Source: Trichosphaerium sp. ATCC 40318 (lineage: Eukaryota; Protista; Tubulinea). Taken from it: DNA of 64,000 nt. The notes under the pieces were generated by a model. It made no database searches and was not told the origin of the DNA. It saw only the letters and a program-made list of their open reading frames with translations. The DNA is taken from the NCBI GenBank assembly GCA_038496445.1, contig JALMLS010000213.1, positions 310,001 through 374,000 of the forward strand. Reading direction: 5' to 3'. Below are positions 46,789-51,913 of the stretch, piece by piece. Made by a program: the position numbers and the translations under genes. Numbering within the stretch: position 1 is the stretch's first letter; the number at the start of each line of letters is the position of its first letter.

Positions 46789-48543
46789 AATGGCGTAACA
46801 TTACTACGCCGCTCGCGTACATACATTACCGATGATCGCAAGCCAACGTACTATACATTTTGAAATTGAGGGTTTACAACAACGTTCTTACGCTCATCTA
46901 TCTCATTTAGCCGGTTTTGGGCAGATAAACGCAATGTTCGCCAGCAACTTGAACAATTTGGCGAAAAATTCCGCCTCATGCTACGAGACGATTGGTATAA
47001 GATGAAAACAACACAATTGAATGAAAATGGATGTAGAGCAATTGTAAAGAGGTACGAAACCATCAACGACAGGCTCATTTCAATTCAAACACCCTCTGAT
47101 CGCTTCAAGGCATGACGAATCTCTATGTAAAGTGCTTACAACAAATTTTCCAGAGCATAAATTTCAAGGACACAAATTCCTGTACGTTACATCTTTTGTG
47201 TATCTTTACCTTAATATTCTACGCGTAGAAAGTCCCCTCATGGATATTGGGATGACAAAATGGTCCAAATTGAACGACTTCAATTAATAGAAGAGAAGTT
47301 TGAATTAAAGACTCTAGACGATTGGAAAAACGTGTCATTCGCTGATTTCTCACAAGAATTTGGTGGCCTCTCTTTGTTAACAAGGTTAGAACTCTATCAA
47401 ACAAAAAACAACGTTCCATCGTTTAATTTCTTTGTAGCTACAATAATTCTCTTTTAAAGCTTCTAAAAGCAATATACCCTTATCATCTATGGATGAACCA
47501 TGATTGGAGTGCAGCAGAACATCGTCATTTATCATACTTGCCTCGAAGTTACTGGAGCAAAGTGAAAAATCGTGTTCAGTTTGTAAATGATGTTGCAGCT
47601 CCTCAATTGGGTATAAGGCGTTACGAAGACTGGTACAATGTATTACCAGTTCGTTTGAAGCGTCTAGGCGGCGGCACGATCCTCGACCAGTGCGTAAATC
47701 TTCATAAAAACAAATTAGTTGTAATATCCTCTCAGGTACAATAATTCCATGTTCAGGATTCTACGAGCTGTTTATCCAGAGTTCGCGTGGAATGAAACAT
47801 CTTTCAAGTACGATTTTTTTTTTGAGTTTGGTTTTCTTGATGTACATCTAACACGCACGTGGTTTAGAGGCACAAGGAGAAACTATTGGAAAGGAAAAGA
47901 TAACGTAATACGTTTTTTAACCAATGTCCACAGTCGATTAAATATGCCGCAAAACCCGCAATCCTGGTACGTCAAAAAACCCACATTTTGTATTGTCAAG
48001 TGACAAATATATGTGCTTTGGTTCTTGCGTCTTATTTCTTTTTATTTTGCGGCCTGTCGCGTCATACTTTTACCAATAAAACGAAATCAAACAGGTTTTT
48101 TTTTTGTTATCGCTTTGTTGCTTCAACATTTGTTGGCGACTTTGACCAATTGCTAGGTTGGATGTATCTCTACACCAATTACGTTACCTTGGAGGATCTG
48201 GTATTGTGTCTTACTACCCACAAGTCCTGCAACTCGTGTATCCAGATGAGAAATGGGACTGGGATGACTTCAAAAGTAAAATCAAGCGATCACAGCAAAA
48301 TTGGCTTCTGAAGTGTATAAAAACTCTATGTGTACAATAAACCAAACAGATGAAACAAAATTAACAAGTTGGATATCATCAAAATTACGACATACACATC
48401 ACAAATTATTCTCTACGCGGATTGGAGACACGTGGAAGACTTCGGGATAAAAACGGGATACAATATCAGAATTACAGTTTCTAGCGGCCAAAGAAATTCG
48501 CTTGTTAGGATCTTTGCTTCCACATGAGAAGACAGCCATTAAT
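46789..48543 (+). CDS. Uncharacterised repeat protein of the 'LGIxxxEDWYxV...GG...VYPExxW' family (ends approximate)
   Basis: Four related units: LRDDWYKM, LKTLDDWKNV..FGG, LGIRRYEDWYNV..LGG..VYPEFAW, and W..V..LGG..VYPDEKW. Confidence 0.7.
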
Positions 48544-48746
48544 GATTTAATTTATTGGCTAGTGTACACTGTCTAATGAGATAGTCGGATATTCGTGAGA
48601 TCCTCAAATCTTATTTGGCATTCCCCTATGGCGCTACACGCATACACGCAGTGGTATCATCGTGTAGTTTTGGTGAAAAAAGCATGCTGTGGGGTTGATA
48701 TTTTGGCAAACTATGTTACGGCTTTGTGACATATTGTGGTGTACTT

Positions 48747-49504
48747 CTAACCTCTTTTCAATCTGCTGTACTCAGCGTATTGTGCCTTCAAAGCTGTTTC
48801 AATAAATTTAACAGCTTTAACTGGATTTGCGGATTCTCCGCATGTAAAAGTGTCCACAGCTGCATACCCATGCTCTGGCCACGTATGTATGCTTATATGA
48901 GATTCTGCTAACAGGGCTATGCCCTTTTGAAGGGTTTGTGAGCAATAAAAAATCAAATGGTTGTATGACGCACTGTTACGCCCACTGGTGAGAAGGAGTG
49001 AACCTAAACGGAAAGTTTGTTTGTTGAAAAGTAGTTCTGTAAAATTATGTACCCGCACTGAACCAATCAATGTGGCGTTACCAGCACGCACAGAGCCTTC
49101 AATGACAGCTTTTATTTTTGTTTCATCATTGAGAATTTCCTTATTACATCCGTACAGGTCAGCTAAATATACCATTAAGCGTGTCGACATCGCCACTTTA
49201 CTGTGGAGTGTACCGATGACGTGTTTGCCATGCTGTATATTATCGTATTTAAAACCGCGCTAAAACAACTTAAAATACATCATCACGCGGCCAGATAACG
49301 CGCTAGTTCGAAAAACACAAATTAGCATACATTTTCACCAAACGAACTTCGTGATAAGTCTTTCCATCGATGTGGCTCTGCATCTTGAAGCTTATTCAAA
49401 GCCGAGAACACAAATAAATACTGCAAAATCACTAGAAACGCCAATAATACAGCTGTCAACTGTACAACGCGAATCACCAATCCAAGTTTCGGCCCGTTTC
49501 CCAT
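48747..49504 (-). CDS. speD: Prokaryotic-type S-adenosylmethionine decarboxylase proenzyme (SpeD) with an N-terminal transmembrane signal-anchor
   Basis: Spliced model: TM exon ending SSFGEN|RGFKYDNIQHGKHVI|ADLYGC...GNATLIGS|VHSFSPVGVT|GIALLAESHISIHTWPEHGYAAVDTFTCG...LKRG*; ESH self-cleavage motif intact. Confidence 0.85.
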
Positions 49505-49894
49505 TTATTAGCCTTTGAGAACTTTAAAGCAAACAACAGTAGCGCAGTTTCCAATCCGTTACTTTTTTTCGTAGCTAGAAAAAAAAAACCAAAACACGCG
49601 CTAATACACATACACAAGGCATTAATTACTTGCAATCTCAAAGGAACATGAAGATACAACTATGAGCGCTAGTAGGAACGTCGAAAAGTGATAAATTTAA
49701 CACTTTATACTTTAATACTGCATGGCCTGCGCAAGTGGTTTTTTTTTTTCAATAATAACCTTATACATGCTTGTGGTTGTTGTGTTAAAGTAGTTGCAGT
49801 AGAATTGACGTCAATTTTAAGCACGGGAATAACGCCTATTACCATTTTAGGATTTCATTCTCTAAAATTTTCACGCAAGCGACGCCACCTCCTC

Positions 49895-50526
49895 ATGCGC
49901 CTTTCACCAATCTACAATAATCGCGATGGCTACGACACAGAGCAGCTACCTGTACCACCAAGAGAACACTGCGAGCTAAACAAACTAGCGATGGAACATT
50001 ACAGACGTGTAAGAGAGAAATACGCTTATACATTACTACAACGCATGTATAATGAATATGGGTACGGTTTAGAAGCAATTAGAGAAAAATCCATTCCATC
50101 AAAAAAAAAAAAAACTTGCGCCATTACTTTCCTTTACCCTTCCTTTTTCCCAACCTGTTTAACCATCTTTGCAGACCTCTTATTGTACAGAACACATCCA
50201 GAGGGTCACTTATAAAACTCTGCCCAAATAGAAGTACCCCACGTGTACCTGAAACTCATTACATGACTTCAAACGTACAAGCGTTACATAGAGGAAGAAC
50301 AGAAAATGACAAAGAAATATCTTTCGCGAACACTGCCACAAGAAGCAGGCGAGCTCTTGGGAGCAGGCCGACAGTTAAACCTCCGCCTACAGATTGGCCG
50401 TTACGACCACGCGGAGTTTTGAAACGACGTAGTACACCTAAGCCACAATCTAAGAAGAAATATTCATTCATAAAGCTAGCAACATGCCAGGCGTGCTCAT
50501 CTAAATCAACAAACACTTTAAAATAA
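49895..50526 (+). CDS. Hypothetical basic protein (2 exons)
   Basis: ATG 49895; phase-2 intron GTACGG...TTGCAG (about 50061-50174) joins two ORFs in frame; no recognised domain. Confidence 0.4.
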
Positions 50527-50892
50527 CCCACAATCCTCTCAACCGACAAATATTATTTAAAATTGGCGTCTCAACCTGTACTTAGCCAAAAATTCTTGTA
50601 CATAAACCTCTAATTCTTATTGAACGTCGGGGCAACTAAGTAGTTTTTTTTTTTTCGTAACTTCGAAAAAGTCGAGATCATTTATGTTCTTTTTCGGCTG
50701 CTAGCGCTAGACAAGCGCAAATCCACGTGAACTTTATTTTAGAAAACATAACGTTTGTTATTGTTATTAGCATTGTAGTTATCGTACAACAGCGGACTAT
50801 CTCGTACGAAGATGTACCAATGGCGTCGTTTGGAAATCTGTTGTGAGCTTGGTTATGGGATTTTTGGTGTAGTTTCTATTTTACAACTAACA

Positions 50893-51913
50893 TTACGCAG
50901 TTTCTCCGTCAATGTCCGCTAGTGGGTTTGCGTGGATAGTAATGTAGCGAATTTTTATTGGCGTGATGGGACGTTCTCCTTCTCCAGGTACCACCTCCAT
51001 CGCCTTCAGGACATCGTTACCATGCAAAACTCTAGAGATAATGGTCAGGATACATAAAAACTAGCGCTAGCGACAGTAGCGTATCACGTGCTCACGTGAT
51101 TCTGTCGTGCTGCCATTCAACTAATAAAGGTAGCGAACCACATTTGCTAGCGCAAGTGAGGCAAGTGCGCTTGTGATAGCATTTTGTCTTTTGTCCGGGC
51201 TTAGCGGAGAATTTGATAAAAAGTGATTTTGTGAGGCAGAAAGTTTAAAAAAAGAAGAAATGTCTCATCCCAAGAATTCTGGCTCGTAAATTTTTTTTGC
51301 GCTGTTGGTTTTTTTTTGGTTTTTTTAGCAAGCGACGTACTGTCCGAATATTGAGTATTTACCATCAAGAGAAGGTAGAGCCTTGTATGTAATAAAAAAT
51401 TGGGATTTGTTCGTATGTGGACCAACGTTCGCCATTGACACTACGCCACGCCTGTTATGCTAAGGTGATGTTATATGGGTGCGATTTAAGCGGAAACAAA
51501 GGAGATTTGCGTACAGTAAGTTTTTCACGAATCTCATCTTCAAATTCATGACCGTATATGGACTGTCCTCCCTTGCCTTTGTTTGTTGGATCACCTGTTT
51601 GCACTATAAACCCTGGTATGTTCCTGTTTGATAGAAAAACAAATTGAGTTTGCAAAGCTTTCGCCAATAAATGCTTACCTGTGAAAAATACAATTGTTGT
51701 AGTAGCCACTGGCGCACAACGCCAAAAAATTCTAAATTGTAAGTTAACTGTGTAATCAGTCTTAATAATTGTCGTGTTCGCCCAAAAACGTACGTATGCG
51801 CATACTGGCGTGTCCTCACAGAATACTTCAATCTTAATATCACCCATCGTTGTATGCAACGTAACCGACTTAAATTTCGCGTTAGGGCGCGTATATAATA
51901 CCGTACGTACCAT
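50893..51913 (-). CDS. PPIL3: Cyclophilin-type peptidyl-prolyl isomerase, PPIL3-like
   Basis: M|[15 protein letters not shown]; [11 protein letters not shown]; [14 protein letters not shown]; [17 protein letters not shown]; ITIHANP. Confidence 0.92.

Follow-up and report, generated by a model that had tools for sequence, protein, structure and literature searches.

We analysed a window of 64,000 nucleotides (nt) from Trichosphaerium sp. ATCC 40318, and all coordinates given here refer to this whole stretch. On its minus strand (49504-48747) lies a gene for a SpeD protein, the small prokaryotic-type S-adenosylmethionine (SAM) decarboxylase (AdoMetDC), which carries a hydrophobic segment at its N-terminus. 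The gene has five exons separated by four GT-AG introns of 49-71 nt, and its spliced coding sequence (CDS) of 537 nt encodes 178 amino acids (aa) and closes with a TAG stop codon at 48749-48747. An initial annotation of the DNA had placed an ATG-started open reading frame (ORF) with a transmembrane (TM) segment upstream of the SpeD exons, which was confirmed. Exon 1 (49331-49504, minus strand, as are all features of this gene) runs for 58 codons from the ATG at 49504 to a GTATGC donor at 49330, has a strongly hydrophobic product, and holds the start codon, the anchor and the first part of a linker (residues 1-58). The hydrophobic signal-anchor or TM segment, delimited by a hydropathy scan, is encoded at 49397-49486 (approximately residues 7-36, core V13-L36), with K6 and R12 on its N-terminal side. 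Intron 1 (GTATGC...TTTTAG, 49260-49330, 71 nt) has exactly the coordinates proposed in the annotation and joins exon 1 in phase 0 to ...RGFKYDNIQHGKHVI. Its acceptor AG sits within an in-frame TAG, and exon 2 offers no alternative in-frame ATG, also as annotated.

Exon 2 (49214-49259, 46 nt) supplies the end of the linker and the first strand of the SpeD fold (..HGKHVI). It is followed by intron 2 (49163-49213, 51 nt, phase 1), exon 3 (49053-49162, 110 nt, ADLYGC...GSVR), intron 3 (49004-49052, 49 nt), exon 4 (48974-49003, 30 nt, VHSFSPVGVT), intron 4 (48924-48973, 50 nt) and exon 5 (48747-48923), which carries residues 121-178 with the catalytic core, ends at a conserved R-G and includes the TAG stop. 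The splicing of intron 1 into GKHVIADLYGC that had been proposed was therefore correct as to the junction, but GKHVI and ADLYGC are themselves separated by intron 2. In the same way, the gene does bear real introns, but four (the others being 49213-49163, 49052-49004 and 48973-48924) rather than one. A second SpeD copy was looked for within the 64-kb window and none was found.

RNA contigs from three public runs (X1, X2 and X3) were aligned to 47000-51500; this evidence consists of assembled contigs and not of reads, and the library type is not on record. An X2 contig of 822 nt spans 49525-49331, a 46-nt piece that corresponds to exon 2 between two joints, 49162-49051 and 49001-48552. Its joints at 49331>49259, 49214>49162 and 49051>49001 are those of the predicted introns 1-3 and link exons 1-4, the last joint being equal to 49053>49003 given three ambiguous letters. 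The contig reaches 49525, a position 21 nt before the ATG, where it meets the template-switch oligo sequence ...GTATCAACGCAGAGTACGGG; past this position it runs into the reverse complement of ...TATCAACGCAGAGTACGGG, which we take to be the SMART template-switch oligo with its terminal GGG. Because the template-switch oligo abuts there, the X2 contig represents cDNA with its 5' end at 49525, and strand invasion is unlikely at this position since the genome has no G run there. The exon 1-2 junction, which the initial annotation had left for RNA to decide, is present in the X2 contig, and with the cDNA 5' end upstream of the ATG the TM exon is transcribed and the transcript does not start downstream of it. 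The resulting 5' untranslated region (UTR) of 21 nt (49505-49525) contains no upstream ATG, and an in-frame TAATAA immediately precedes the start codon. The 3' UTR (48432-48746) extends at least to 48552 in the X2 contig and probably to about 48432 in an X1 contig. At position 48535 of the 3' UTR, X1 (2015, labelled organism A) differs from the window by G>A, and this position is not covered by X2 or X3 (2023, labelled organism B). The runs labelled organism A and organism B are probably from the same species, because their contigs are otherwise at least 99% alike.

Several observations weigh against a working anchored gene. Intron 4 is retained in the X2 contig, which leads to a stop codon six codons on, ahead of the catalytic serine; the contig could stem from pre-mRNA that had not been fully spliced, or the retention could be regulated. 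The 5' exons of the gene are covered by a single contig of one run. In the protein collections, searched by word index and exhaustively with HMMER using an intron read-through ORF as query, neither a close orthologue nor the gene's own protein was found, no representative matched with E < 1e-30, and an orthologue with the same anchor was not found either. One could read these observations to mean that the anchored form is not meaningful, either because the gene is a decaying or poorly spliced remnant of a transfer or because the main transcript uses an unseen first exon. We consider this very unlikely. No break interrupts the frame in any of the five exons; it closes precisely at the conserved R-G, and all catalytic residues are kept. 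Four correct splice joints are seen, and a contig of X3, which comes from the same sample as X2, splices both intron 3 and intron 4 (48973>48922). Nor do these exons provide another start, given the in-frame stops just before the ATG and at the acceptor of exon 2. Taken together, the locus very probably encodes a real membrane-anchored SpeD of the prokaryotic class known as class 1b.

The catalytic domain was recognised in separate exons. Exon 5 alone matched the Pfam family AdoMet_dc (PF02675) with E = 1.2e-22 and 80.7 bits (cut-off 25), and exon 3 matched profile positions 5-38 with E = 4.2e-05 and 24.3 bits. In the spliced model, residues 69-178 aligned end-to-end with numerous SpeDs from bacteria and metagenomes (50-55% identity), and the best SpeD match reached 59% identity over 104 residues. 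Conservation was scored in an alignment of the spliced model with 379 homologues. Of the 36 columns that are conserved in at least 75% of these homologues, the protein matches the consensus at 34, and both deviations are conservative (D75 for E and S97 for A). The matching columns include G69, H71, F114, P116, G118, E127-S128-H129, H133-T-W-P-E137, Y140, D144, C148-G149 and R177-G178, among which E127, S128, H129, H133 and C148 are each approximately 100% conserved. The ESH, HTWPE and TCG motifs reported in the initial annotation are intact in the spliced translation. In the Thermotoga maritima SpeD, S63 is the self-processing serine, and H68 and C83 take part in processing and catalysis (PMC10407285). 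Their equivalents here are S128, H133 and C148, and self-cleavage is predicted. The putative autoprocessing site corresponds to the codons of E127-S128 at 48900-48905, with S128 as the would-be pyruvoyl group, and the catalytic cysteine of the TCG motif, C148, to the codon at 48840-48842.

Judged by these residues, the domain is an intact class 1b SpeD, as Li et al. 2023 (PMC10407285) name the small prokaryotic type. Among solved structures, those of the class 1b AdoMetDCs from Thermotoga maritima (1TLU, 1VR7 and 3IWB) and Aquifex aeolicus (2III) are nearest; these enzymes share with it the PF02675 family, the fold of approximately 110 residues, the E-S-H motif and the H68/C83 equivalents. Whereas these enzymes are soluble, cytoplasmic and encoded without introns, the Trichosphaerium protein adds a 66-residue N-terminal extension with the anchor, and its gene has four spliceosomal introns and resides in a eukaryotic genome. 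The eukaryotic class 2 AdoMetDC consists of two fused class 1b-like halves and has almost no sequence similarity to class 1b (PMC10407285). This enzyme (AMD1) is larger, soluble and cytosolic, and presumably performs the same reaction with the same pyruvoyl chemistry as the anchored SpeD.

From its motifs, the domain is most probably a true SAM decarboxylase. A proline in the central region is invariant in AdoMetDCs and not conserved in the SpeD-derived arginine decarboxylases (PMC10407285); both central prolines of the protein (P116 and P136) are present, so the AdoMetDC-invariant one is kept whichever of the two is meant. Its motif also equals the AdoMetDC consensus. The same paper gives four residues (Gln, Thr, Phe and Tyr) as diagnostic of SpeD-derived ornithine decarboxylases (PMC10407285). 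What counts against SAM as the substrate is that the assignment is drawn from motifs only and that SpeD-derived arginine decarboxylases are hard to distinguish from AdoMetDC by sequence, from which they differ little (PMC10407285). The protein could be a neofunctionalised SpeD, that is, a pyruvoyl decarboxylase of arginine, ornithine or another amino acid, perhaps with a substrate close to the membrane. Arginine and ornithine decarboxylases have arisen from SpeD repeatedly, and Nannochloropsis gaditana and Tribonema minus have intron-containing genes for SpeD-type arginine decarboxylases (PMC10407285). Like the anchored SpeD gene, these are class 1b genes that were horizontally acquired by eukaryotes and later gained introns, and the long, unplaced branch of the anchored SpeD in our trees would also suit such a change of function. 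However, the Nannochloropsis and Tribonema proteins are arginine decarboxylases in a defined clade, whereas the anchored SpeD keeps AdoMetDC-type motifs. The words 'transmembrane' and 'signal peptide' occur 0 times in the paper that describes these genes (PMC10407285). The retained central prolines, the SpeD consensus, exact or conservative, at 36 of 36 conserved columns, and a core motif that recurs unchanged in the Aquifex enzyme deposited as AdoMetDC all speak against an altered substrate, which we regard as distinctly unlikely.

The SpeD protein begins with MGNGPK, continues with the hydrophobic segment at residues ~7-36 and a polar linker of approximately 30 residues, and ends with the SpeD domain, which begins near residue 67 and takes up the rest of the chain. 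In a hydropathy scan of the spliced translation, the mean Kyte-Doolittle value of 19-residue windows in the anchor reached 2.66. By hydropathy, this is a single N-terminal segment of bilayer-spanning length with no plausible signal-peptidase site, and a typical cleaved signal peptide is unlikely because the hydrophobic core of 24-30 residues is too long. Methionine 1 is the only methionine in the whole 178-aa protein. With this single methionine and the in-frame stops just upstream, no AUG-initiated, anchor-free SpeD can be made from this mRNA, and the enzyme is probably made solely in membrane-bound form. N-myristoylation of MGNGPK seems less likely: G2 is present, but position 6 is a lysine and not the preferred small residue.

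The orientation of the anchor bears directly on where the enzyme would act. The N-terminal flank has a charge of +2 (K6 and R12) and lacks acidic residues, and the 15 residues that follow the core sum to a net charge of 0; these flanking charges weakly favour N-in/C-out insertion, which would make the protein type II. Against a lumenal SpeD domain stand the small charge difference across the anchor, the general tendency of long, very hydrophobic anchors to insert N-out/C-in, the need to import SAM and to export 5'-methylthioadenosine (MTA), and the need to keep the catalytic cysteine reduced in an oxidising compartment. The opposite orientation, or some other tether, would leave the SpeD domain facing the cytosol at an endoplasmic reticulum (ER), Golgi, vacuolar or plasma membrane, where it would supply decarboxylated SAM locally, for example to an anchored aminopropyltransferase or a polyamine transporter. 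From established knowledge of signal anchors, a core of 24-30 residues after just 6-12 N-terminal residues favours translocation of the N-terminus. A cytosol-facing enzyme would also be metabolically simpler, drawing on cytosolic SAM with no transport of SAM or MTA, and its Cys148 would stay reduced; the catalytic cysteine of SpeD is sensitive to modification (PMC10407285). On the other hand, K6 and R12, with no acidic residue, face a net-neutral C-terminal flank, and the positive-inside rule then favours N-in, while translocation of the domain is implied by those homologues whose short linkers follow signal-peptide-like N-termini. We therefore hold the cytosol-facing arrangement to be the lesser option, unlikely on balance yet the most serious competitor to the type II orientation.

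The homologues in question were found among the 382 collected proteins, approximately ten of which have an N-terminal hydrophobic extension ahead of the SpeD domain. P0137, from a EukProt Trinity transcriptome, shows a signal-peptide-like stretch after its first ~30 residues. Residues 1-30 (MIRRPPRST...DVYKRQ) are presumably translated sequencing adaptor, and the true start is probably a later methionine followed by the signal peptide. The P0007 cluster comes from marine metagenome contigs with long non-coding flanks, and one of its members is in MERC, which we take to be the marine eukaryote metatranscriptome catalogue. P0269 is encoded on a 31-kb contig together with cyclin and PLA2_B genes. 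P0131 (L036:591-1058) lies on a bacterial contig between a YfiH-like gene and a DsbD_TM gene (L036:1143-2375), followed by SpoU and Rpe. As its signal-peptide-like N-terminus is encoded directly upstream of a DsbD_TM thiol-reductant transporter, this arrangement hints that the SpeD works in the periplasm with its catalytic cysteine in the reduced state. P0141 is a signal-bearing protein of 314 aa with two tandem AdoMet_dc domains, and a gene for a single-domain SpeD follows it (both within L038:4001-5484); its compact metagenomic contig, which also has Band_7 and Peptidase_S49 genes, could be bacterial or viral. The contig of P0161 is likewise compact and, with many small unannotated ORFs, looks virus-like.

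P0137, the P0007 cluster, P0269 and P0131 resemble the anchored SpeD in having an N-terminal hydrophobic signal or anchor, a short linker and a complete SpeD domain, and all are unannotated and unstudied. Their N-termini, and those of the other signal-bearing SpeDs, resemble short cleavable signal peptides followed by short linkers, in contrast to the 24-30-residue anchor of the Trichosphaerium protein. Such N-termini would place the domain outside the cytoplasm, and they suggest that an extracytoplasmic SpeD is a recurring design. The signal-bearing SpeDs do not demonstrably form one clade with the anchored SpeD gene. In the sequence tree the marine P0007/P0137/P0184 group was parted from it by a moderately supported branch (90/85), and a single clade of signal-bearing SpeDs including the SpeD protein was not rejected by the approximately unbiased (AU) test (p = 0.19, 114 columns). 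The protein also contains a glycosylation sequon, N102-A-T, which is found at the same place in P0007, P0137, P0184 and P0269. We considered it as the mark of a glycosylated lumenal clade and rejected it: the sequon is present in 71 of 286 signal-less homologues as well, mostly bacterial, and is thus inherited and not diagnostic.

The origin of the gene was examined through its relatives and its genomic setting. The closest matches are mostly unnamed metagenome proteins, and those with names are bacterial or archaeal SpeDs at 50-59% identity. In an IQ-TREE analysis of 90 sequences and 114 columns, the SpeD protein formed a long orphan branch within an unresolved bacterial polytomy. FastTree likewise kept it apart from the marine P0007/P0137/P0184 group and joined it weakly (SH 80) with P0064, P0168, P0204 and the fusion protein P0216. 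Giant viruses encode class 1b AdoMetDCs (PMC9992855), and among our collected proteins SpeDs at 33 viral loci, some on contigs of more than 300 kb, showed 38-56% identity. A giant virus or phage was rejected as a specific donor: the viral SpeDs are no closer than the bacterial ones. Transfer of the gene from a prokaryote or virus is well supported, and the tree does not resolve the donor lineage. The lateral acquisition suggested in the initial annotation is borne out by the prokaryotic and viral relatives, the introns, the eukaryotic neighbours and the host-like composition.

The SpeD CDS has a guanine-cytosine content (GC) of 0.43 overall and 0.38 at third codon positions (GC3), compared with 0.46 and 0.41 in the sampled part of the CDS of a nearby cyclophilin gene, and its introns have a GC of 0.37, the same as the window overall. 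The surrounding genes are eukaryotic and spliced, with introns of 46-309 nt, and the short introns of the SpeD gene are host-like. Contamination and mis-assembly were rejected because the gene has introns, its eukaryotic neighbours are spliced, and the cDNA contigs match at 99% identity or more. The SpeD gene is a resident of this genome and compositionally adapted to its host, and the four introns together with the host-like composition argue for an old transfer event.

We propose the following mechanism for the anchored SpeD as a type II membrane protein. The 24-30-residue segment would serve as an uncleaved signal anchor for co-translational insertion into the ER. Since K6 and R12 make the N-terminal flank more positive than the net-neutral C-terminal flank, the linker and the SpeD domain would come to lie in the secretory or endosomal lumen or at the surface of the cell. 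Self-cleavage of the proenzyme at the E127-S128 bond would leave the beta chain (residues 1-127) in the membrane, holding the 51-residue pyruvoyl alpha chain, presumably within the kind of (alpha-beta)2 dimer known from Thermotoga. SAM would then be converted to decarboxylated SAM beside a co-localised aminopropyltransferase, in a route separate from the cytosolic class 2 AdoMetDC pathway. The whole chain, from lateral acquisition and intron gain to an anchored class 1b AdoMetDC of lumenal topology, is a tentative reading that we place slightly short of probable.

A wider extension of this proposal is a second, membrane-compartmentalised aminopropylation pathway, distinct from the cytosolic route of AMD1 and spermidine synthase, in which the anchored class 1b AdoMetDC would work, on or within membranes of the secretory pathway, with a likewise anchored spermidine-synthase-like enzyme whose amine-acceptor loop is altered. 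It might yield unusual polyamines, long-chain polyamines, or secreted or wall material that has been aminopropylated. A role in coat, scale or cyst wall, as suggested in the initial annotation, is conjectural. We regard the pathway as speculative and rather unlikely. Coupling of a class 1b SpeD to its partner is known in another form: some bacterial and diatom proteins, a number of them with a SET domain, are gene fusions that make decarboxylated SAM where it is used. In the anchored SpeD, by contrast, the coupling would lie in the shared membrane anchoring of separate proteins. Among the collected proteins, P0216 (619 aa) is a triple fusion of SET, AdoMet_dc and Spermine_synth domains, and a combination of SET, AdoMet_dc and spermidine synthase is the architecture proposed for the synthesis of methylated long-chain polyamines. 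For diatoms, earlier work proposed that fusions of a bacterial-type AdoMetDC with an aminopropyltransferase take part in making long-chain polyamines (Michael 2011 FEBS Lett, cited in PMC6356823). If the compartmentalised pathway exists, it would be a counterpart, outside the diatoms, of this proposed diatom machinery, achieved by co-anchoring and not by gene fusion.

What is new here is the obligatory membrane anchor at the N-terminus of a eukaryote's class 1b AdoMetDC, an enzyme that as such is of a known kind. The searchable literature, which leaves out most subscription journals, yielded no account of a class 1b SpeD that is secreted or anchored in a membrane, nor of decarboxylated SAM in a lumen. 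To our knowledge, AdoMetDC is regarded as a soluble cytoplasmic enzyme across all three domains of life, and aminopropyl transfer is essentially the sole use known for decarboxylated SAM. An obligatorily anchored enzyme implies that decarboxylated SAM would be made at or inside a membrane compartment, and it would require a local SAM supply, a co-localised aminopropyltransferase and a non-housekeeping product. The SpeD gene therefore offers a testable entry point into compartmentalised polyamine chemistry outside diatoms, and a case of a bacterial-type metabolic gene retargeted after transfer through an added 5' exon. Because scattered signal-bearing SpeDs occur in eukaryotic transcripts and one lies on a bacterial contig beside a DsbD-type transporter, extracytoplasmic SpeD enzymes may be an overlooked class.

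The neighbouring genes were delimited from the cDNA contigs. A convergent gene with at least five introns occupies approximately 47049-48347 on the plus strand. After 47049 it uses alternative acceptors (47108 in X3 and 47152 in X2), its joined exons change frame within 47229-47689 by an intron or a frameshift, and its product has three repeats of a motif of approximately 60 residues (..LL..L.AVYPE..W....F..). On the other side, a cyclophilin-type isomerase gene with a 309-nt intron lies at 50720-51459 on the minus strand. Between it and the SpeD gene, approximately 410 bp upstream of the SpeD start, a divergent gene on the plus strand (49938-50616) encodes a basic protein and has one intron of 113 nt. 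In this gene, the template-switch oligo abuts 50182 in X2 and the X1 and X3 contigs extend to 49938, which suggests either two 5' ends or a truncated cDNA.

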